A stretch of DNA of 64,000 nt from Bugula neritina (lineage: Eukaryota > Animalia > Bryozoa): the NCBI GenBank assembly GCA_964035545.1, contig OZ037766.1, positions 5,384,722 to 5,448,721 on the forward strand. Reading direction: 5' to 3'. Positions 46,101 through 64,000 of this stretch are shown here, in pieces. The stretch's first letter is position 1; the number at the start of each line of letters is the position of its first letter. Under the pieces are notes generated by a model. It was not told where the DNA came from. It saw only the letters and a list, made by a program, of their open reading frames with translations, and ran no database searches. A program made the translations under genes and the position numbers.

Positions 46101-49100
46101 TTCTAACTATATTTTATCTGCTAAGGAGTTATCTTCTTTTGGTGCTATAATATTGCTGTACTATAATTTGAAAAGAGTATACAGAAGGTAATCACACATA
46201 AAATAAGCTAAATACTGCTACAGATTTACAGAATCTTTATAAATGTTTTACAAACATACTTGGTAGTCATGACGATGAGTCGTACTTCCTCCTGCCACAC
46301 CATGTTCCAGAAGTCAACAATAGTTCTATTAGTTGGACCTTGGCAACATATGTAGGCTTTTTTATGCGTATATCCATTAACAAAGTTGGCGTTGATATAG
46401 TCTGTGGTAGTAGGCTCCTTCAACTTGACTCTCGTGGAGTCATAACAGGGTATGTCAGTGTATCTGTTCTTATTGCTGTTACCTTTCATTCTGTTCAACA
46501 TTAAAGTGCAAGTCTTACAGAACTGGGTGAGTTGATCATCGATATGATGTCACCAAATAGCCAAATAAGTTTAGGGGTTGTGCAGTAGTCAGATGACTTA
46601 TCTACATATCAGCCAATGAAGTAACTCTTATATTTAATCTACCAATCAATTCAGCTCTTTTATAATTCTACTTTGACTCATAGTTAGTAGTTGATGCAGT
46701 GGGATTCCAAACCCTATTAATGGCATATCATTTTCTTCACATTTTTTATTTTTAAAATCCAGATAACTAAAGAATGATCTAGAAATGAGGGTAGCTATAT
46801 ATCTTAGATTATCAGAAAAAGCATGTTTTCTTACTTCTATAAAACATGTATAAGCTTGCACCACCTACCTAGTTGTACGTGCTATCTACATGTATATGTG
46901 AACCACCTACCTGTATGCATGCACTACCTACTCATGAAAACTTATGTAAATCATGTTGCAATTATTGGTCAACTAACAATGTTGAAACAACTCCAACTTT
47001 TCACTAGTCAGAGATATATTAAAAGGTGTCTTTACCTCGCTGTGTCAAATGTGCTTGCAAATGGCTCGTTCACAATATAGAAGTATTGGGATCTCAGCCC
47101 TTCTGATTTATACAGCTTGACTTGGTCCAACTGCTGCTCAGGGGTCATCAACAATGTAGTCTTCGAGGTAAAGACAGACTCGTATAGTTCTGGATTGTCT
47201 ACTTTAGAAGTCTCTGATTTACTTCTCTCAAGTTTGCTGAGGTCTTGCTTATTAGAACCGATGCTACTGCAAAGACAAATTCGTTAAATGTTGTATAAAT
47301 GATGTTTGTTTATTTATAACATTCTAAATTTTATGCTGGGAAATAAAAATAATACACATTTACACTAGCTTTTTTAATGTCAAAATGAATTTGCACACTA
47401 TTATAATACTGAGAAAGCTTGTGAATAGTAATATATATTAATTATACACATCTTCATTTCTATGTTTTAGCAATTGCTAGCGGAGAGATATTTTTACGAT
47501 ATTCAAGCTATAAGAATATTGTAAAGGAGAATGTTTTATATACAGTAATAGTTACTCAACAAATTTGAAAAAAATACACAACTAGTATATAACTTTAGTC
47601 TACCAATAGCATGAAGAATATATAATGGTGTATACAAATAGTATCATACCATTATAGCATAGCTGCTAAAATATATTGCCAAACACCATCAAATAACATA
47701 ATATACCTATATCAGAAGATTTTACTGAAATAAAACTATTACACTTGCATGTTTCAATTAACTTTACAGGAATGATAAAAGCTAAAGTAGACTGAGATAC
47801 AAACTCACCCGCCTGCTGATGAACGGGCCGGGGGTGTGACCGAAGGTGTAGGCACCGCACTGCTAGGTTTATTTGACAGAGCAGATTTTTTTCTCAGATC
47901 CGGGAGACCAGATGGTTTCTTTTCCACACTTTCAGGAGCTACATCAATCGATTTCTTGATGTCCTGTTTACCTTCATTAGTAGCTTGAGGTGCTGGTTTA
48001 CTTTTGCTTTCTTCAGTCTTACTCGGTGGACTTGCTGGCGCATCCTTGTTAGGGTCACTCGAGGCAGCAGGTTTTCGAACAATTTTAGAAGACAGCAGTG
48101 TTTGAGTGCCAGTTCGCATTTTTTGTAGTGGTAGTTTAGAATGCCGATATATTTTATAGCTAATAAGACGATAGTATGTATCGGTAGGTTTCTGTAGGAG
48201 AGCAGCAAATTGTTGTACATTTTTAATTGGCTTAAAATCTTCTTCAGTAACTTGTGTACCAATCTCATAACCATAAAAGGTTAAGTCTGTCTGAGTGGTG
48301 CTATGGCTCGGAGACTGAAGTTTGAAATTGTTTTTATTTTTCCTAGATCTAAAAGCTGCAACTTTCAAGAACAAAGATGTCGGTAAAGTTAGAGATGCCG
48401 CAGGTACGACTGAGTTTTTAAATAGCTCAAACTCTTGCTCTACAACATTTGTGCCGACAGAAAACCCATATTGGTATTCTGCTGGCAAATCATCAACCTC
48501 TTCCTCATCCGAATCATCGTCGTCAAAATCTTCCCCATCGTCACTGTCAGAATCGTCATCATCTTTGTCACTTTCATCGTTGGATCCAAAAAGCATTTTG
48601 TAACCTTCATCTATTTTGGCCATTGTGTAGTTTACATTTTGCTTTGTCTCATCAAACACAGTATTTAGCGAGTATTTCATTAAAGATGTTTTATCTTTTA
48701 ATATTTCACTGGCATTAGAGATCCTTGATGAAACCTGAGATTTAAGTACAGCTGAAGATTTTTGAATCTTATCTTTAATTCCAATTGATTTAGTAGCAAT
48801 TTTATCTTTTAACCCGACTGATTTAGAAGCAAGTGTTTCTCTCAACTTTGGAATTGAAAAATTTAAAGTTTTCTTGCCTTTAAAATTGGAAGGTTTTAAA
48901 TTTTCCATAGAGTTTGAGTGGCAATGCTGATATTTCATAGAATTAGCATTATCATTAAAGTCGATCTTATTTTCAAACTCATCGCTGTCTACCCAATCAT
49001 TCATTTTTTGTGATTCCTTACTGGCATTTCTTTGAGGACTTTTATAATATAGAGAATTATTGACTTTATAATCATAGGTTTTGTGATTGCCACTACTACT

Positions 49101-49445
49101 ATTTAGTGGAAATGGGTAATTTGCAAAATCATCAAGACTTCCACGAATGCCATTACCTACAGAGCTCTTAGGACTTCTAGTTGTATAGTTGTCTGGAATC
49201 TGGTGGTTCCCGTGCCGGCCGTGGAACCTGTAGTTTTCCAGATCTGTATAATTCTGAAAATTTCCGAAACCCTGTGGACCCTGACTGTTTCCCCGATTGA
49301 TAATATTCTGTATGTTTTGACGGTTTTGAATCATTGGTAAGGCAGCCCGAGGGTTTTGTGCTTGTGCTTGATCTTCCTCATCCTCCTGCAGCCCAGGGTA
49401 GAAGGACTCGCAGGTAGTATGAAGGCTTTCACTGTCATCACTCAT
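40196..49445 (-). CDS. Non-receptor classical protein tyrosine phosphatase, PTPN9/MEG2-like catalytic domain behind a long low-complexity N-terminus
   Basis: Exons ~49445-47809, 47266-47036, 46490-46260, 45739-45589, 45484-45338, 40468-40196 in phase. [83 protein letters not shown]. Start codon uncertain (possible acceptor at 49480). Confidence 0.88.
41302..45125 (+). CDS. CPEB1: Cytoplasmic polyadenylation element-binding protein, CPEB1/Orb subfamily (2 RRM + ZZ), nested in the PTP intron
   Basis: Exons 41302-41389, 41936-42105, 42223-42507, 42617-42690, 42802-42853, 42959-43084, 43295-43408, 43687-43833, 43919-44046, 44179-44383, 44494-44588, 44769-44861, 44961-45125 in phase. [87 protein letters not shown]. 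Orthologue versus paralogue not resolved. Confidence 0.9.
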
Positions 49446-51647
49446 TACTATTTCATCACTCACTTTACGCTGCTTGCATTCTATTTTATATAACTCTTGT
49501 CATCTTAAATAAAACTTATATTATAGCATTGTTTGTTCTTAGCAATGTGCAGCATTTCATTACGCATTGTTGCTGTTAAAGTCGCATGCTACCCTGTAAA
49601 CTATCTTGAAAATTTATATTAGAAAATGATAAAAGTAGTCAATTTTATACAAATATTATAATAATTTGACGAAAATTAAGTGCTATCTACAGATTAATGT
49701 CATTATATTGAACTCTTGATAGTATGCATAGGAATGGTACCATACTAAAATTTTTAAATTATCTGATTGCATATATTAAGATTGATTGCCATAGATTTAT
49801 CATTATAATAAATATAATATTATATTATTAATAATTGAACCAATTTTATGAGTATATGAGGAGCTACATGTAAATGATCAACTATAAAAGCATAGCTTTA
49901 AAACTTTGGTAATTTTATTAAATTTACAGATACATTCGAATGTCACAAATCATTACAACACAGTGGAAGTTATTCATTTCTGCATGTTTTATTCTTTGTT
50001 ATTTAGAAGCATGCATAATACTTTATCTAACAGCACTAGCCAGTGTGTAGATCAAGTGCAATATGAAGTCTGAGGTCTAACATGTTATATAATAAATACA
50101 ACTTGAAAAAGGTTTTGAGACAAAACAAAAGTTTGGAACTTGGTTTAATATAAATTTCTCAAGGCAACTTTGAATGATATGCATAAAATACCCACTGTGC
50201 CAAGCATGGGACATAATTTAGGGTCATGCTACTACAACTGCTACTGTATATTAAAGGCCAGCTACTACAATAAAATAATTATTTGATCTTTGATCTTCAG
50301 GTTGTTTAGTCACAAGTATACACTTGGCTAGACAGATATTATCTAAGAAAAAATTCCTGCTTTGCATTGACTTAGTGAGTGCGACAAGTTAAACTCTCCT
50401 TTGTATACTTCATGGTCAACTCCCTCTAAAGGGGTCAAATCAGCAACCAATAAGAGTAAAATAACAAAGATCAATTAAACCTTTTTCTTATGTTTATGTT
50501 TACGTAAGAAACCCAGCACTACAAAAACACAGGCTCTACCTTATTAAAGAAAACATTCTTGAGTTCACTAATTATGTAAACCCTTTGGCTGAAAGGGTGC
50601 AATTGAAAGACCTGTTATGCACATATACTGCACATACCTATCAAAAGATTTTTATAGCATGAAAATTCTAAAGAAAAATTCTATGTCAGATGAATAAGAA
50701 GTATATGTGATGAAGAAATGTTATGAAACAAAGGGCTGCTAGCAACTAATAACATATGTGAGACTACGATTACATCAGTGGCCTATTGCATTCAGCAGGT
50801 AGTGAGAGAAGCATATAGAGATATTTTTGAATTCTGAGCATATATTTATAACAAGGTGAGTTCGAGATTAACCTCAGCTCCATTCACCGTCATATTATTA
50901 GAAAAATCTTTGAGTGGGTAAATAATGACTCTTACCAAATTTCACTTCTTATTACTTGACACTTTATAGTTTATGCTATACATACATTGTGACCATAAAT
51001 ATAATAAAACATTGCAAGAAATTTAGAAATTTTAAGTTCTATTCAATGTTGCTATTACCATAAGGACATATGTACTTGTGGAAAAAATATGATAAAAAAT
51101 TAGTTCAAGGTCAGGTATTAACAAAATAGAAGCAAAACATGTTGTAACAAAGCAATTCACAACCTAGCTCAATATTGCTGTAAACATATAAACATTAAAT
51201 GCTACTGAACTTAGCTGAAAATTTAGGTCTATTGGCATTTCATTGTTAATATCGTGCTGTACGTATTATAGTTTATTATATAAATTTGCAAGCTGTGTAA
51301 AAACATGGCATCATTATTTTAATGAGCATAAAATTTAATATTTAGCAAATTAAAATTTAGTATTTAAGATGCCAGATAGCTGCTACAAGTAGACAATGCC
51401 ACGAATAACAGCCACTTTCTAAACCTGTCAGTTATATTGGATTTTATGAAGCAATGAACTTTAAGGAAAGCAGCTATTGAATTTAGATAATCATTGTTTT
51501 TGCATTGACTTTCATGCCTATCAGTTAATTGGTGCTAAGATTTGAGATCACAGTGACTGTTGGCAAATCTTAGTGCATGTAGAAATTTATAATGCTGGTT
51601 TGATATATTGAATAGGTTTGTTGCAGACACAGGCTATATAACTGAAC

Positions 51648-52763
51648 ATGTCTGGAAGTTCTAAAGAACTAACAGCTATTATAGTAAACCTGAAGGAGGC
51701 AAGGATATTAGACAAATCAGTACAAACACTGGCGTTAGAAGAATCGTATGCCTCCAAGCTCTTAGATCTCAACAGTAAAATGGTCAAGTTCAACTATGGA
51801 AGATTGAAAAACAATGTGAATAAAATTCGGTCATACTTAAAGCCAGAGGAGATCAGCGTAATGAGAAGTTTAGAGTCAGATGGCAAGTTTAAGGCAGAAC
51901 ACCCAATGATATGCAGCAGCAGCAACGCTACAAAAATCGCTGCCGCTCATAAAAGACTGAACTTAAATTCATACAGACGAGCACAAAGTGCCATGCCAAG
52001 AATTCGACAACAGCATAGGAATACAAAACTGTGTAACAGACAAGGAGCTGTTACAAAGTCTGTTGAAATTAGCTCTTTAGACGAGATATCAGAACCTAGT
52101 CTTTTATGCTCACATCGAAAAGAAAGACCTAAAACAACTATTTTATCTGGACACGATGAAATTGACGACAAGGAGTTGACGTTGGAAAGGAACACGACTT
52201 TGCTGTTAGAGAAGATAACACGAGCTCAAAAAGCCAACAAGATTCACTCGCCACAAGTAACTTACAGCTGCCATGATGAAAAACCGCCTGAAAGTGACGA
52301 TTCAAAAGGAAACAAAAGTGTGCTTGATGCTTTTGGTCCCAACCCTTATGAGGAACGCCGACAAAAACTTCTCAAAACTGAAAGTCAAGCATTTTCACAA
52401 TTAACAAACAAAAAGCAGGGATTTGTAGAAGATGTTAAAAAGTTCATCCGAGAAAACCCATGCCCAATTTCAACAGAACCAGCAATGACTCAGGAGATAA
52501 TAAACTCAATAGACAGCATGACAGCTCGACCAGGTAGGCAGTATGCCTCTAATGGAGCTAAGGCTAGGCTTCCAAAGAGGCGTGGCCGCTTGGTGATAGA
52601 TTTGTTTGCAGAGATTAGAAAAACTCGCTATCTAAGAGTAGATGATTCCCAGATTGATTATTCTAACAGTAGTACTCTAGCACGAGAGTTTATGAAAAAA
52701 ACAGTGCAATGGCGTCATTATGAAAGCAAGCCTTTATCTTTTCATGACTCGGCCATGCTTTAA
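51648..52763 (+). CDS. Uncharacterised 371-aa basic protein, single coding exon, N-terminal helical/coiled-coil region
   Basis: 1.1-kb open frame with higher GC than its flanks; acceptor TTGCAG at 51621-51626 just upstream of the ATG. No family recognised. Confidence 0.75.
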   Translation: MSGSSKELTAIIVNLKEARILDKSVQTLALEESYASKLLDLNSKMVKFNYGRLKNNVNKIRSYLKPEEISVMRSLESDGKFKAEHPMICSSSNATKIAAAHKRLNLNSYRRAQSAMPRIRQQHRNTKLCNRQGAVTKSVEISSLDEISEPSLLCSHRKERPKTTILSGHDEIDDKELTLERNTTLLLEKITRAQKANKIHSPQVTYSCHDEKPPESDDSKGNKSVLDAFGPNPYEERRQKLLKTESQAFSQLTNKKQGFVEDVKKFIRENPCPISTEPAMTQEIINSIDSMTARPGRQYASNGAKARLPKRRGRLVIDLFAEIRKTRYLRVDDSQIDYSNSSTLAREFMKKTVQWRHYESKPLSFHDSAML

Positions 52764-54146: not shown

Positions 54147-54328
54147 ATGAACGGCAAGAAGAAAGATCAAGCAAGCACATAGATGTAAATTTATTGCAGA
54201 AAGCCATATTCACCGAAGATGTTGATGAGAGAAATTACTACATGCTTAAAATTATGAGAAAGGGCAAACAACTTCCAAATACTAATGAAGATTTGTTTTT
54301 GCCGTATAAATATAGAATGTTGACATAA
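54147..54328 (+). CDS. Orphan candidate terminal exon (DERQEERSSKH...YKYRMLT*)
   Basis: TTGCAG acceptor, 60 open codons of protein-like composition; upstream partner uncertain. Confidence 0.35.
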
Positions 54329-54669: not shown

Positions 54670-57600
54670 CTATTCTATATAGGTTGAGCCAAAGTACATG
54701 GTCTCGGGCTCATCGACGTCCTAGAAGTATACAATACAAATTGCTTTACTAACAAATAGATGCTGGCAGGAGAGCATAAATCCCACTATATTTAAATAAA
54801 ACAGTAATACAATCTTGTATTAATTTTATATAATTTTTAAAACATTGCACTAACTTTGACGTTCATATAGCAAAAACAATACAAAAAGATATCCTATATG
54901 CTTCTAACAAGTTGCCATGTAAAACCGTATTTTGATAGTTGCACTACAGTCCTTATCCACACCAGTTCTCTTACTATTTACCACATGCAGCTTTGTAGGC
55001 AATTTTGGAGCTAGATAAAATTTTACCTTTACAGATAATGGACTAAAAATTATATTTGTACTTTTAACTAATGAACGTTCAGAGCATGTATGAATCTTAG
55101 CTGTAAAATAAATGGGTCTTGGAACATTCAACTTATTAACCATATGCAAACACCCTTTATATTGATCTAGCATACTAGCCTACTGTTTTAGTTCAATGAA
55201 ACTGATTTATTCCGGTGCTACTTACTGGCTCATAAGCACTTTTCCCTGGTTTCAGCTTTTTAGCATCTGATGTGCGCTTAGTTGAATGCTTTTTACCAGA
55301 GGATTTGGGGCTTTCAGTAACCTTTCCTGGAGATGTTCGTCTACGCCTACGTCTTTCTGCAATACAAATATGATTGGCCGCTTCACAATGCATCTGCAAG
55401 TATTCAGATTATTTGTAGTCCGAATAGCCAATACTTGTGACATGTTGGCTAGGCACACCTCAGCATGTATATTCACTAACATCTAATTTTATCAAGATAA
55501 CTGGATGGCATTTAAAGTTGGTTAAATAACTAATTATGCTTATGACTTCATTTAAATATTGTGATGCAAGTAGTGATTGATAAAAAATCTTAAATGAATT
55601 ATCTATTTACTTTAGCTAACTTTTTTTTTCATAATCATACGCCCCTAACCTGCAATGTCAAAATATTTCTATCTGTACAAAATTGAATACAGCCTCATTA
55701 TGCTTCTAGCTTTCTCATCAAACCTAATCTATATTTTTTTTCCAAACCCTTACAAGTAGCAGAGCTAACAGAATGTAAGAGAGTTGATTTTTTAAGAGTA
55801 AAGCAATTCTAAATGAACTAGTTCTTAATTTTTATTATTTTGAAACTTAATAAACATGTAATTAAACAAAATGTTACAGTTTAAAATGTGAGATATAACA
55901 TAAAGTGGTAGACTATGGCCACTAAACTAATAATTGCTAAAATAAATTCTCTTTAAATGTTTTGCAGTAGGTAAGTGCAATATTACAGCAATCTTCAAAT
56001 AGTTGACTGATTGCAATAGAAAATAGACGCATTAGAAATACTTACTTTTCGGCTCAGGTTTGTCTTCAAGCCCCTCGTAAACAGGCATTGCATCTTTTTG
56101 AGCAAATCCTTGATACATATTTGGGTCATCTTTTTTTGCAAATCCTTGATACATATTTGGGTCATCTTTTTGAGCAAATCCTTGATACATATTTGGGTCA
56201 TCTTTTTTTGCAAATCCTTGATACATATTTGGGTCATCTTTTTGAGCAAATCCTTGATACATATTTGGGTCATCTTTCTGCGCAAACCCTTGGTAGACAT
56301 TCTTTTCATCCTTTTGTGCGAACCCTTGATACATGTTTTTGTCATCTTTTCGATCAAATCCTTGGTAGACATTTTTCTCATCTTTTTGCGCAAATCCTTG
56401 ATACATATTTGGGTCATCTTTGTGTGCGAATCCTTGATACATATTTGGGTCATCTTTGTGTGCGAATCCTTGATACATATTTGGGTCATCTTTGTGTGCG
56501 AATCCTTGATACATATTTGGGTCATCTTTTTTTGCAAATCCTTGATACATATTTGGGTCATCTTTTTTTGCAAATCCTTGATACATATTTGGGTCATCTT
56601 TTTTTGCAAATCCTTGATACATATTTGGGTCATCTTTTTGAGCAAATCCTTGATACATATTTGGGTCATCTTTGTGTGCAAATCCTTGATACATATTTGG
56701 GTCATCTTTGTGTGCAAATCCTTGATACATATTTGGGTCATCTTTGTGTGCAAATCCTTGATACATATTTGGGTCATCTTTGTGTGCAAAGCCTTGATAC
56801 ATATTTGGATCATCTTTCTGTGCAAACCCTTGATAGACATTCTTTTCATTGTGCTTTGGTTCATTCTTTGTCTGAGGCAATGGTTTATCCCTTTGAGCAG
56901 GTTTCCCCCCTAAAGGTTTATTAGGTTCTAAAAAGCATATACAAGTTTGAACAAAGTAAAAAATACCCTAGTACAATAACTCAAAATAGCTATTCAATCT
57001 CACAAATAAAACAGACATTACTGAGCACCTACATGCTTAAAATTAATTAAAATATGTACTGAGTAAAACCTGTTGCAATGTACTTTTTTTTATAAATTTG
57101 TCCCATAGAATGGTTGAAATTATGACTCAACTTGAAATTTAAAATTAATTTGTGGACTCTACCAGTCAAATCACATTATTAGTATTATTAGTATTGCACT
57201 CATCAATTGTCTTTATTAATTATAGGTATGTGTTTTATCAACCAAAGTACCTATCTGTTAAAAGCTCAAGTTAAATAATTTTTCATCTGTGAAATTAAAA
57301 CTTTGATTTAAATAAAAATTTCAAGAAATAATTCAAATTGACCGAAATATTTAATGGTGGAAACCTATAAACCTGAAATATATGGAGTTAATACAACTGA
57401 TTGGTAAACTCAATCTGGTTTTCAAAATTCGTAACAATGAGGAACTCAATGTAACCAAATAAAATATTTAAATAATACTAACCATTTGAATTCTGTTTTT
57501 GGTTAAAGTTGTCATCAATAATAGCTCGCTAAAAACATTATGATTTGATTTTAAAGCAAAAAATGACACAAAAAATTTATTATGGCGACAATAGGAGTAA

Positions 57601-60600
57601 AACTAGGGTAGCATTTACGCAGGTTGACTAATGAAACAAACATGTTGAGCAAATTTTGTGGCAGAAAACAGCGTTTCAATTTCTTGTAGGTATACAGGTA
57701 ATCTATGCTTATGGGTCATTTTACTTAATTTAGTACACACTGGATATCTTCAGTTTTTAGCTATTTTTCACAATTTAACTGCTAATGGACATGGTTTTTT
57801 GCCCAAAATTAATAAAGTACCAATAAATACACCTAAATAATCAAAGTTCTTTAAATTTTGCTTCATTTCCCATGTTTTTTCCTAATTATTCAGCTACTTT
57901 TGGTTGCAGACCGTTACGGTTTTTTGTAACGGTCCGCACTCCTAATAAGCTAAATATATAAGAAAAAACATGGGAAATCAAGCAAAATTAAAAAGAGCTT
58001 TAATTGTTTCAGTGTATTTATTGGTGCTTTATTAGTTTTAAGCAAAAACCCATGTTCATTACCAGCTAAATTGTGAAAAATAGCTAAAAAATGGAGATTT
58101 CAGTGTGTATTAAATTAGGTAAAATGACCCTTATAGTAACATTTAGCTTTATTTTATGGACGTTTCAAACATAGACATTGCATTGGCTCAAACTTACTTG
58201 TTCTTTCTTGACTTCTCTATCATAGACAGTTGGCCCTTCAACATAATGGGCCGGTCCTAGAATCATAAAACAACATTCATGTGAGAAGACAATTAAGACC
58301 TTTTTTCGCTGAGAAATATTTATAGACACAGAAATTTAAAACAAGCAAATTAATTCAGATTATACCTAAAATAAAAATAGGTAAAACAACAAAATTATAA
58401 TAAAACTTCAAAAAAATAAACACTTGAAATAATTTTTTAAGCGTGTAAGAATTTCTTAGTGATTCTTAAATTTTTAAAATTTATCTGTTTTTCATAATTA
58501 TACATGTGAGAAGTTGAGAAAACAATGTTCCCGCAGGGATTCAAGACCTGCAGCGTTCAAGCTAGAGCACTAACCATTACACAGCAGAGACTACTGGGTA
58601 ATTAAAACGCTACACTCACAGGAGCTTGAAAGGGAAATGATACAATTGAATCTTTAAAATTTAGTTGAGAGAATTGACTAATAGAGTTACAAAAGGAGTA
58701 CAACTTGAGAGTGTAGGCTATATAAAAAGATCAGCACATAGCGAGATGCACAGTGTCAATGGCAATAATACAATACCTGAATCAACAGATTTTATGTTCC
58801 TTTGCTCATTGTAGTCATCCTCTTTTGAAGCCCTCTTTGATGACATTGATTTGGTGATAAACAGAGGCTTTTTGGCGGGCGGCTCTGAGGACGGTTTTGC
58901 TATATTAGGGAGAGGGAGAGGGTCCTCGCCATAGTAATACTCGTACTCATATATTTTCTCAGTATCTTTGTTGTCTCCTGGTTTTACTATATCTTCTTCA
59001 TAATAGTAGTACTCACTCTTCCCATCTGCTCCACACACCAACAATTCATTAATTATTTTATATTACTTATATTCAATGTTTGTGTATCACCACAATATAT
59101 AACAGAGCAGAACACTTGTTGATAGTGGCACTGTGTCATAACTGCAAATATCCCAAATATAATTCAGCACCTGACAAAAGCCCCTTCCTTATAAGAGATA
59201 GGAGCTGAGCTGAGCTGAGCTACGAGGTTGATATGCTTATAAGTTAGAGTAACAGGCTGATAATAATAACTATAACTAATAGATTCTTACCAAATGAAAA
59301 AATCTTGGTTTCACACTGACCAAATATGTAATAAAAAAGCTACAGCTTTTAGTGACTGCTGCAGGTTTAGTGACTCATCTCTACCTGCATTTTTCCTTTT
59401 TCGCTTTTTCCTTCTCTTCTTAGTTTCTTCTGCAACAGCTTTAGTTGCTTCTGCCGTGATTTCCCCGTAATCAATATCTATCTGGTTCAACTTCTCCATC
59501 AGCTTCGCCTGGCCAGCGTCCATAACAGTGCTCTGAACCAGCTGAAAAATTTAAACTACTGAAGTAAAAAATGGAATTAAATGAGAAATTGTAGAAAATT
59601 GTTTAAATAACACAGCCCGGGTCTATGAATTATGACTATTTGTAATTTAAGCAACATTTAAGTTATAGTATGTCTGTCAATAATCATACAATTAATTTTA
59701 AACAATTTGAAACTCTTTACACAACTTCAAGCATCTGTGAATTATTCTGCAATTATGACCTAAAATCTGTAACCTTTGCAGTTACATAAGAAAGTAAAAA
59801 AATACCTTTTTCATCTCCTCAACTGCTTTGTGCTTTGCTGTTATCTCGGCATCAGACGCTCGATGTTGAGCTAACTCGGCGTTTCTGGCCATTTCTGCTA
59901 GGAACTTGTTGTAGAGTGCCACCCCTTGAGCATTCAGTTCCTTAGATTAAAATCACAAAAAATTATGTATAAGCAAACAACTCCAAAAAAATTCAACTAC
60001 ATATAGGAAAGCTGTTAACAAAACATCTCAGACAAATAAATTGATTGATACTCATTTCTTGAGTTGGTAAAAGATGCTTTTCGTCCCGGTCATTCAAGAG
60101 ATTGTACATATGATATAGCTTTATTTTGCAACTCATAATCTAAAATCCACCCTTCACTTTTTGTTTATTGTTTTTCTACAGATTTGCTTAATAAGTCAAA
60201 ACAAACTTGCTATAAAAATGGTCATTCACACCAGTTAGGTTTACATAAAAAATCATTTAATTAATTGAAATGAATATATTTAATCTTAGAAATATCTGAA
60301 ATAATAAGAGCTAAGCATCAACAGATGGTTATGTTGTGCCCTTGATTAGAAGATTTATTTTTAGCATGCTAAATAGTTTGTCTACGAAGTCCCAATCCAT
60401 GGAGATTTGTGTTTCAAAATCCAACTTCATATATTAGTTGAGTGATTGAAAACACATTTAAAAGGAAACTCAACATTCACTCTAAAAGATTTGACAAAAA
60501 ACTATTGACAATACGAAATGAAACGCCACCCACCGCCATATGCTGCTGCTGCATTTTCTGCCATTGAAGTTGTGCCATCTGTATTTGAAGAACTTGCTCG

Positions 60601-61589
60601 GCATCAACGTCTTGCTGCCTCAGCTGCATGGCTAGCAACTCCTGTTGCTTTTCATGCTCCTTTTGTTGCTGATATTCTTGCCACCTAAATAAAATTATCT
60701 TAAGATAGCAGTAAGTCAAAACTTCTCAGCCAAAGGTAAGTTTACAAAAGCACTCATAAAAACTACACCAGGAAAAAACAAAAAAGCATAAAATAATGTA
60801 TAAATGAATAAGAAGTAAAGAAACAAAAAATCTAATGTATGCGCAATACACATTATTTTTTTTACGAGCAATGTGGAGAAGCTAATGCAGCCACATTTTG
60901 TACAACGATAATAGCCACACTGTGTGTGTTTCATCATTCTAGCTACAAACTCACTAGTAATAAAGAATATGTTAACAAGAAGCTCTAACTACCTTTTAAA
61001 GTTTTCAATTGGATCCGCTTCAGGCGCAAGGCTGGGTTCTGCATTTACCTCTACATGAGGTTTTTTAACAGCAACCTGAGTTGGTTTACTAAAGCACACT
61101 GCCTTGATTATCAGGTACAGGGCAGCAGCAAGAACGAAACCAGCTATAGGAAGGGCTATGAGCAGCTTTAAAAGCAAACCATTCTCTTGCCAGTCAGAAT
61201 ATATAAAGTTAGCTGGAAAAATCAACAACAAATGTATACCATATTAGAAATGTTTTTTAAAATAGTACACAATTTACCAGCAATAGAGCTTATGTGACAT
61301 CCAATAAACTCATGTTTTACGCTAGAATAAGAAACCTGATGAAAAATTTTAAAGCTACTGTAATATCAAACATATAAAGAATTGTAATAGTAAAAATATA
61401 CAGTTTCAGCAGCTAACACAAGTACGGATGGCTAGCCATGTTTTACAAATTGCGATATCCTAAAAATAATGTTAATAGTTAAATATAATTAGAACAAAGA
61501 AAATAATAAAACAAAGTAGGGTGTTATTCACATCTAGTTATGAAAACAATACTTTGAAGTATTTGTTTTGATTTCTTACTGCTAGACAT
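54670..61589 (-). CDS. Unrecognised single-pass (type III-like) membrane protein, ~696 aa, with Gln-rich coil, Tyr/acidic patches and 22 tandem Tyr-motif repeats
   Basis: Exons 61589-61580, 61212-60993, 60684-60534, 59940-59806, 59541-59385, 59025-58777, 58256-58198, 57528-57483, 56927-56046, 55356-55226, 54720-54670 join in phase (2091 nt) with GT-AG ends. TM segment LLLKLLIALPIAGFVLAAALYLII. Confidence 0.72.
56059..56850 (-). repeat. Coding 36-bp tandem array, 22 units, consensus DDPNMYQGFA(H/Q/K)K
   Basis: Directly visible; the frame is fixed by the splice phases of the flanking exons. Confidence 0.95.
57713..58130. mobile_element. Foldback/MITE: ~420-bp near-palindrome in an intron
   Basis: Arms GGGTCATTTTAC...GACCGTTAC / GTAACGGTC...GTAAAATGACCC, ~205 bp each with a short T-rich loop; TA/TTA at the flanks. 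Confidence 0.85.
58529..58604 (-). mobile_element. Degenerate tRNA-like SINE, second family
   Basis: Revcomp AATTACCCAGTAGTCTCTGCTGTGTAATGGTTAG...GGTCTTGAATCCC; shares its head with 9757-9812. Confidence 0.5.
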
Positions 61590-62773: not shown

Positions 62774-64000
62774 CTGAAATATTAAGCAGAAACACTGTCA
62801 CAAATTCTACTTTATAAACTGTTATAATACATATCACTCTCTTTTGTTATTTTAGCCTCCACTTGTAATTAGTATGGCACACAAGCCTATGCAAGTATTA
62901 TTGCGCAATAGTTGTTTACATTTTTAGTCAATTTTTATTGGCTAATGAATAGTGCCTATTCTGCACGAGTCATGCAGTGTGGAATGTGGTAGAATTTTCC
63001 AGACTCATCAATTTAGTATAAAAGCAGGTGCTTTACTTGTAAAAGTAAGTTCATTTTCATAAGTTCAATTTCATAAGTTCATCTGTGCATATCTTGCTGG
63101 AGAAATAAAGTCTACTTATATTCACAACTCTATTTACTCTCAACTGGATTAGCAAGCTGTATGCTACTTGTCTATACACTTCTGACTCGTCACACTGCTA
63201 CCAATAGTTTCGTGACAAACACTATGACTGTAGAGAAACATCGATACAATAAAGACTTTTTGCAATCTATTATTGATACGACTCAGAAATTTGAAACCCT
63301 TTCTAAAATAGTTCAAAATAGCTCACAAAAATATACATTATAATAAACTCGGACTTAATATTTAATTCTACTTGAACTTTTTAACAAACCTGTTTAGCTA
63401 GCAATTTTGAATGCACAAATAACAAGCTGCTAAAATGAGTCTCAATCTACAAATGAGTTGGAAACAGAATTTCTGACCACAATTTAACAGAAAAACTGGG
63501 ACTCCATGGTTAGTATTACGATATTCAGGCTGCCCAAATAAAAGCACAAGAGAGGCTTTATTCCCTGGAAGGATATGAAATATCTAAGATATAAAAACAG
63601 TGTATCATGGCATGCTAGGCAGACTGGCTGAGCATTTTATTTATCAGCCATTCTATTCTATTGATTAGCGGCTATTACTGGATTTAGTGCAAAAACCTAA
63701 TAAACCACAGGAAAATGTCAGAAGATGAATGTTAATGTTCATAGTTCTTCAGTTATGGTTGTATTAGCAACACAGGTAATGGTGTTTTGGCATAAAGTAT
63801 TATAGTAAACATAAAACAAGATCTCTAGAATCACAAGTTTTAACTGAAAAACTGATGTAGAGAGATATTGTATGTCATGAATGATATAATACCTACATTA
63901 ATCAGTAGGGTAAAACCCTTACCACATTGAAAGACGGTGACATCCATTTTATCATGTAGAAGAGGTAATCCACAGTGATAGCACTCAGCATCTAAACTAA

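Follow-up and report, generated by a model that had tools for sequence, protein, structure and literature searches.

Transmembrane adaptors are grouped by function and not by homology, and their shared plan consists of a few outside residues, a single helix, an acylation site close to the membrane and a long tail that carries tyrosine motifs and no domains (PMC4861716). In p180/RRBP1, an N-terminal membrane anchor is combined with a tandem array of short units and a coiled coil (PMC12491259). The gene described here lies on the minus strand of a 64,000-nt stretch of the genome of the bryozoan Bugula neritina (the window; GenBank assembly GCA_964035545.1, contig OZ037766.1, positions 5,384,722 to 5,448,721), and positions given below without a contig name are those of the window. 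Its most likely product, as predicted from the splice model, is a single-pass membrane scaffold with a multivalent tyrosine-motif tail, in which one short motif is repeated 22 times.

Tyrosine-motif array and gene model

Tandem Repeats Finder placed a minus-strand array with a 36-nt unit at 56091-56835 (20.7 copies, 91% matches). In the frame set by the flanking splice sites, the exon that holds the array encoded 22 units, 21 with YQGF and a final one with YEGL, and the distance from one tyrosine to the next was 12 residues in all 21 intervals. A preliminary description of this DNA had reported the same array and spacing, which repeat detection and in-frame translation confirmed. The consensus peptide of the unit was KDDPNMYQGFA followed by a variable H, Q or K. 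The last unit was degenerate, with 12 of its 36 bases changed, yet it retained V-Y-E-G-L. The 12-residue spacing results from the unit length of 36 nt; it is a mechanical outcome of that length, and no evidence of tuning to tandem SH2 domains. A fold prediction for the repeat exon with AlphaFold2 (AF2), made without an alignment, gave a predicted local distance difference test score (pLDDT) of 38.7 and no confident fold, as expected if the units act as linear motifs, and the array is predicted to be disordered.

The splice model comprised 9 coding exons (661 aa), or 10 exons (662 aa) when a 59-nt exon and an internal acceptor at 56871 were used, with canonical AG/GT sites and compatible phases at all junctions (Table 1). 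The joined model was assembled by script for frame, hydropathy and substitution counts, while searches and fold predictions were run exon by exon. Besides the array, the predicted protein had an N-terminus of 15 aa before its one hydrophobic helix, a Gln-rich region that is helical, two polybasic runs and acidic tyrosine clusters. All landmarks listed in the preliminary description (the helix followed by KAVCFSK, the Gln-rich stretch, KKRRKKRKRK, EYYYYEED and YEYEYYY) were present in the model, and its start at 61589 and stop at 54670 agreed, while the 11 exons and ~696 aa proposed there were not reproduced.

Exon 2 had no in-frame ATG and therefore required an upstream exon. Of three ATG-plus-donor candidates that fit exon 2, the nearest was chosen here as exon 1; it had an A at -3, and we infer its linkage to exon 2 from the sequence of the splice sites. 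An alternative first-exon candidate at 63679-63742 would add a signal-like start and leave the side of the membrane on which the tail lies unchanged. Of the three phases, only the one in which exon 6 ends leaves the 59-nt exon open, and this exon was in frame only with the acceptor at 56871, since joining it to the acceptor at 56927 led to an early stop. An extra exon restoring the frame after the 59-nt exon was looked for and none was found; the acceptor at 56871 restores it instead. The 59-nt exon and this acceptor could be part of a mutually exclusive choice between two linkers of ~20 residues, or of a frame-breaking switch that removes the array. Exon 9 was in frame both with the repeat exon and with exon 6, and the first AATAAA downstream of the stop was at 54195.

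Table 1. Window coordinates of the exons of the predicted gene and of the repeat array.
Feature	Position	Strand	Description
Exon 1, coding part	61580..61589	-	ATG + 7 nt, ending in phase 1 with donor gtaaga; candidate, placed by splice logic
Exon 2	60993..61212	-	N-terminal residues, hydrophobic helix, KAVCFSK, basic juxtamembrane stretch
Exon 3	60534..60684	-	Gln-rich helical segment
Exon 4	59806..59940	-	Charged helical segment
Exon 5	59385..59541	-	Helical segment; ends in polybasic KKRRKKRKRK (59392-59421)
Exon 6	58777..59025	-	EYYYYEED (58991-59014), YEYEYYY (58931-58951), Pro-rich part, Ser/Lys-rich part
Candidate cassette exon	58198..58256	-	59 nt; strong acceptor and donor
Repeat exon	56046..56927	-	882 nt, phase 1 to 1; acceptor ttttag, donor gtaagt; alternative start 56871
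22-unit array	56062..56853	-	36-nt units, inside the repeat exon
Exon 9	55226..55356	-	KRRRRRR run, then basic Ser/Lys-rich stretch ending in a YEP motif
Last coding exon	54670..54720	-	Acidic stretch with two further Tyr; stop TAG 54670-54672

Coding status and constraint

A search with the frame of exon 6 recovered a 93-aa product from a public assembly, together with a cluster mate. The corresponding contigs (L012-L015) consisted of genomic DNA; they shared 99% identity among themselves and ~88% with the window, and therefore come from a sibling lineage. They spanned window positions 60808 to 56722, that is, exon 3 to the start of the array. Identity between the window and the sibling lineage was 93.7% in predicted exons vs. 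88.5% in introns (Fisher P 1e-5), and indels were divisible by three in 3 of 3 cases in exons vs. 5 of 34 in introns. All acceptors and donors in the covered region were kept, including those of the 59-nt exon, in which two synonymous and one nonsynonymous differences were found and identity was 94.9%, against ~87% in the flanking intron. Nei-Gojobori counts gave a synonymous divergence (dS) of 0.22 and a nonsynonymous divergence (dN) of 0.032, a ratio of 0.15.

The helical part encoded by exons 3 to 5 was the most constrained, with a proportion of nonsynonymous differences (pN) of 0.016 to 0.028. Exon 3 differed by eight synonymous and two nonsynonymous changes and kept its splice sites, as did exon 4 (proportion of synonymous differences, pS, 0.208; pN 0.028). 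Exon 5 (pS 0.146, pN 0.025) contained one 3-nt indel and an identical polybasic run, and exon 6 (pS 0.169, pN 0.057) had two 3-nt indels and kept every tyrosine. The non-repeat lead-in of the repeat exon was open and 95.6% identical in the sibling lineage.

In units 1 to 21 of the array, five variant codons were seen at N, Y, Q, G and F, all five synonymous and none nonsynonymous, where the neutral expectation was a synonymous share of 0.156 (P ~9e-5), and amino-acid changes were limited to unit positions 3, 4, 6, 11, and 12. When all positions of the unit were counted, 11 of the 24 single-site variants were synonymous vs. an expected share of 0.157 (P 5e-4). In the units shared by the window and the sibling lineage, N, G and F differed only synonymously. 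One antisense frame, which shares the wobble positions, showed a similar synonymous bias and had no gene context. On these substitution patterns, the selected core of the unit is N-(M/V)-Y-Q-G-F. The higher identity of exons than introns, the 3-nt indels, the kept splice sites, the dN/dS of ~0.15 and the synonymous variation in the motif core indicate that the gene is coding and constrained. Judged from sequence comparison, it is a single-copy, lineage-restricted protein-coding gene of a Bugula-type bryozoan, kept by purifying selection on exons 3 to 8.

The order of units differed between the lineages. The sibling array started with units 1 and 2, and the next units corresponded to units 14 and 15 of the window. 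It lacked units 3 to 13 of the window array, which therefore represent a lineage-specific expansion and include many units with the same DNA sequence.

The intron between the 59-nt exon and the repeat exon contained a 421-bp palindromic element (57712-58132) with 33-nt terminal inverted repeats, which was absent at the same site in the sibling contigs. At least 40 full-length copies, 87-94% identical, were found in the genome from 1215 first-look candidates. The element is a recently active family of miniature inverted-repeat transposable elements (MITE).

Other arrays in the genome had a similar appearance. A locus at G000:C5:7204522-7208037 (L008), with a helix-like hydrophobic run and then ~16 tyrosine-containing 12-residue units, was considered as a second gene with a helix and a tyrosine array and was rejected; it is a 36-nt minisatellite between minus-strand exons of an importin-like HEAT-repeat gene, hence intronic, and a false-positive model for tyrosine-array adaptors. 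Large Tyr/Thr/His-rich minisatellites at G000:C1:34910945-34914829 and 34981958-34985377 (L002, L003, L007) were open in several frames and had TAA in the matched frame, and one of these arrays adjoined a retrotransposon integrase fragment. For genome scans, these loci are a warning that AT-rich minisatellites readily yield open frames with periodic tyrosines, and that synonymous-site and cross-lineage tests are needed before an array of this kind is accepted.

Relatives of the predicted protein were sought with several queries. Pfam searches at E up to 1, run exon by exon, assigned no family to the non-repeat exons and gave no match to p180/kinectin. The array matched the beta-solenoid family RDM3_C (PF23348) with 47 bits vs. 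a cut-off of 35, a match set aside as probably inflated by periodicity; other unrelated tandem arrays likewise passed Pfam cut-offs by periodicity, and AF2 showed no solenoid for the array. A representative protein library searched exhaustively with the repeat exon returned 168 matches, all of them unrelated 12-residue repeats of similar composition and no orthologue, the best having 45% identity inside a 1585-aa protein without an anchor. No match was obtained in homologous-protein searches with the lead-in of the repeat exon and with the frame of exon 2; the word-based protein search covered products with lengths between 0.55 and 1.75 times that of the query, so that exon-wise queries could miss full-length orthologues. 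Scans of metagenomes with exon 2 and with the repeat exon as queries confirmed no locus, searches of the Bugula genome itself with exons 2, 4, 5, 6, and 8 gave no paralogue, and searches of PDB sequences and the ESM Atlas, as well as of full-text literature for the motif, gave no usable relative. The search for relatives of the non-repeat part, suggested in the preliminary description, succeeded as far as the sibling-lineage contigs reached through exon 6 and yielded no homologue of known function.

Topology, docking function and alternatives

The model contained a single Kyte-Doolittle peak (2.62), at residues 16-39 (61106-61177), preceded by an N-terminus of 15 residues when the candidate exon 1 is counted. 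The charge of the N-terminal flank of this helix was -2 and that of the C-terminal flank +4, a difference of +6 toward the C side. By the positive-inside rule, the tail is most likely cytosolic, with an N-terminus of ~15 residues outside, and the prediction supports the orientation given in the preliminary description. The 622-aa tail contained 38 tyrosines, one cysteine four residues past the helix (61094-61096) and zero N-glycosylation sequons. For exon 3, AF2 predicted two helices (pLDDT 84), and the conserved helical region of ~150 aa probably serves self-association or partner binding.

The leading mechanism, put forward tentatively and as plausible rather than probable, is a phosphotyrosine platform that would recruit SH2 proteins. 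The short N-terminus would lie outside, one helix would anchor the protein and the tail of ~620 residues would reach into the cytosol, where each unit would be a short linear motif for docking at its tyrosine, and the many units together would make the array a multivalent platform. Src- or Syk-type kinases would phosphorylate the array tyrosines, and SH2-domain proteins would then be recruited. In the unit, the tyrosine is preceded by acidic residues at -4/-5 and a hydrophobic residue at -1 and followed by a hydrophobic residue at +3, a context that suits Src-type kinases and several SH2 classes, and acidic tyrosine clusters like those of exon 6 resemble poly(Glu,Tyr) kinase substrates. The genome contained at least 46 SH2 exon matches, several of them adjoining tyrosine-kinase exons. 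At G000:C7:14371513-14377601 (+), two SH2 exons were followed by tyrosine-kinase exons on one strand within 6.1 kb, which we take to be the domain order of Syk/ZAP-70/Shark. This repertoire is consistent with the phosphotyrosine platform and is no evidence for it.

Several observations weigh against this interpretation. The searches found no homologue of known function, and the splice junctions of the model are predictions from sequence. Exons 1 and 2, including the membrane helix, lie outside the coverage of the sibling contigs, and further ATGs occur a short way upstream of the proposed start. Because the repeat exon is symmetric in phase, skipping it keeps the frame, and exon 6 is also in frame with exon 9. 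Phe at +3 is not the residue of an immunoreceptor tyrosine-based activation motif (ITAM), and YQGF also fits the YxxPhi sorting pattern. A single juxtamembrane cysteine was found, vs. the paired cysteines typical of LAT or PAG, and the conserved helical domain is unlike the fully disordered vertebrate adaptors. In the two lineages compared, the copy number of the array is labile, and the count of 22 is not conserved.

Part of this evidence would also fit a phospho-independent function of the same membrane-anchored protein, in which the array is a YxxPhi ladder for the mu subunits of clathrin adaptors or a set of aromatic stickers for multivalent assembly, and the anchor could be in an endomembrane, on the plan of p180/RRBP1. 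This explanation is a weaker but appreciable possibility: YQGF is a tyrosine followed at +3 by a bulky hydrophobic residue, no fold is predicted for the array, organelle scaffolds have similar polybasic runs and coils, no sequence feature is specific to the plasma membrane, and the p180 plan provides a precedent (PMC12491259). However, Pfam gave no p180/kinectin similarity, the unit is neutral to acidic vs. the strongly basic unit of p180, and the acidic residues upstream of the tyrosine and the poly(Glu,Tyr)-like clusters are features of kinase substrates that are not needed for mu binding. It is highly improbable, the least probable of the alternatives, that the array is an untranslated minisatellite, intronic or in a skipped exon, with its tyrosine periodicity a by-product of an AT-rich repeat. 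Four of the six reading frames of the array are open, and this openness alone is no coding evidence, because tyrosine-rich periodic frames also arise here from non-coding AT-rich minisatellites; other 36-nt-type minisatellites in the genome yield such frames, one of them intronic in the importin-like gene, and joining exon 6 to exon 9 without the repeat exon keeps the frame. Against this stand the synonymous variation of the motif core, both among units and between lineages, the open and conserved lead-in, the strong conserved splice sites on both sides of the exon and the last unit, which despite its degeneration still reads hydrophobic-Y-E-G-L. The antisense frame with a similar synonymous bias has no gene context.

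The membrane exon may also lie outside the main transcript, which would leave a soluble, probably nuclear protein with a helical domain, two runs resembling nuclear localisation signals (KKRRKKRKRK and KRRRRRR) and a tyrosine-rich low-complexity tail. Exon 3 has an in-frame Met that could serve such a product, and exons 1 and 2 are outside the comparative support, and the explanation is a serious rival, as is the phospho-independent array, though an unlikely one. Against it, exon 2 is an uninterrupted frame with a textbook helix and a basic C-flank and ends at a good donor in the exact phase that exon 3 needs, and no other upstream exon candidate was seen for exon 3. A luminal or extracellular tail is very unlikely. 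It would make the product a secreted or surface protein of structural, adhesive or tyrosine-sulfated type, or a decapeptide precursor, and would be in line with the resemblance of the acidic tyrosine clusters to tyrosine-sulfation sites, with repeats of Lys plus Tyr that recall adhesive, cross-linked matrix proteins, and with the small residues at -3 and -1 that follow the helix (A-V-C). The charge difference, however, strongly favours the cytosol, the hydrophobic run of 20-24 residues has the length of an anchor, furin-type enzymes would cut long polybasic runs in the secretory pathway, and a tail of this length has neither a sequon nor cysteine pairs. The secreted peptide precursor, kept as an option in the preliminary description, lost ground with the anchor-length run and its reverse charge bias, and with dibasic sites at only 6 of the 21 junctions between units; none of the units has Gly plus basic residues at its end.

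The phosphotyrosine platform can be extended to a more specific proposal, which is unlikely. The protein would be a bryozoan-specific scaffold in which phosphorylation of up to 21 overlapping ITAM-like tyrosine pairs brings in tandem-SH2 kinases or phosphatases next to one another, forming a switch-like, condensate-type amplifier, possibly in colony recognition or immunity, whose valency evolves fast by gain and loss of units. The role in invertebrate immunity, allorecognition or gametes proposed in the preliminary description would likewise be speculative. To our knowledge, almost all known transmembrane adaptors are from vertebrate leukocytes, and their disorder keeps them from being found by homology. 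A constrained invertebrate gene with the adaptor layout would represent an independent invention of the transmembrane-adaptor plan, and the lineage-variable copy number of the array would give a natural series for how motif valency sets signalling output.

Two further observations concern the surrounding DNA. The window was AT-rich eukaryotic DNA, and the neighbouring genes at 47805-49463 (-; 552 aa) and 51648-52763 (+; 371 aa) were long single open reading frames rich in Ser, Asp and Lys, with no Pfam family. On small unplaced contigs of the assembly, dozens of protein-kinase domains were full-length and contained 5-15 in-frame TAA/TAG codons but no TGA (e.g., C176:33222-33977, C33:18549-19265, C133:75718-76287, and several on C66). 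Read-through of TAA/TAG without TGA has the look of a ciliate-type code, and the assembly therefore probably holds DNA of a colony-dwelling ciliate.

Comparison with known systems

The predicted Bugula protein resembles LAT, PAG/Cbp, NTAL, LIME, SIT, LAX, and GAPT in its single predicted helix, juxtamembrane cysteine and domain-free tail with tyrosine motifs and, if the candidate exon 1 is right, in a short outside part with no signal peptide. It differs from these vertebrate adaptors in having no sequence similarity to them (Pfam), a single cysteine, the helical region of ~150 aa after the membrane and the polybasic runs. The preliminary description had assigned it to the LAT/PAG plan; the layout matches that plan (PMC4861716), while the single cysteine, the helical region and the polybasic runs are unlike LAT and PAG. 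Moreover, the Bugula motifs form a recent tandem array of one motif, whereas vertebrate adaptors carry 5-10 different motifs.

With the ITAM chains (CD3 zeta, FcR gamma, DAP12, and Draper of the fly), the array shares Tyr-x-x-hydrophobic and a spacing of eight residues between motifs, at the upper end of the 6-8 residues of an ITAM. An ITAM label does not hold, as an ITAM has two YxxL/I motifs and 21 of the 22 Bugula units have Phe instead of Leu/Ile at +3, with a spacing set by the 36-nt unit; the 22 motifs also stand in overlapping registers and not in discrete pairs. The protein is like p180/RRBP1 in its N-terminal anchor, cytosolic body (by predicted topology), long uninterrupted array of short units and coiled coil. 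The p180 array, however, is basic, membrane-adjacent and ribosome-binding, whereas in the Bugula protein the coil precedes the array, whose unit is neutral to acidic with tyrosine at its centre.

The substrate domain of p130Cas (15 YxxP), the EPIYA motifs of bacterial CagA and the repeats of Tarp are multivalent tyrosine-repeat substrates, in which valency is thought to scale signalling. These proteins and the Bugula protein have in common one tyrosine motif repeated in a region that is disordered, by prediction in Bugula, with a copy number that varies among lineages. They differ in that p130Cas, CagA and Tarp are soluble or injected, carry other motifs and show no homology to the predicted membrane-anchored protein of Bugula.

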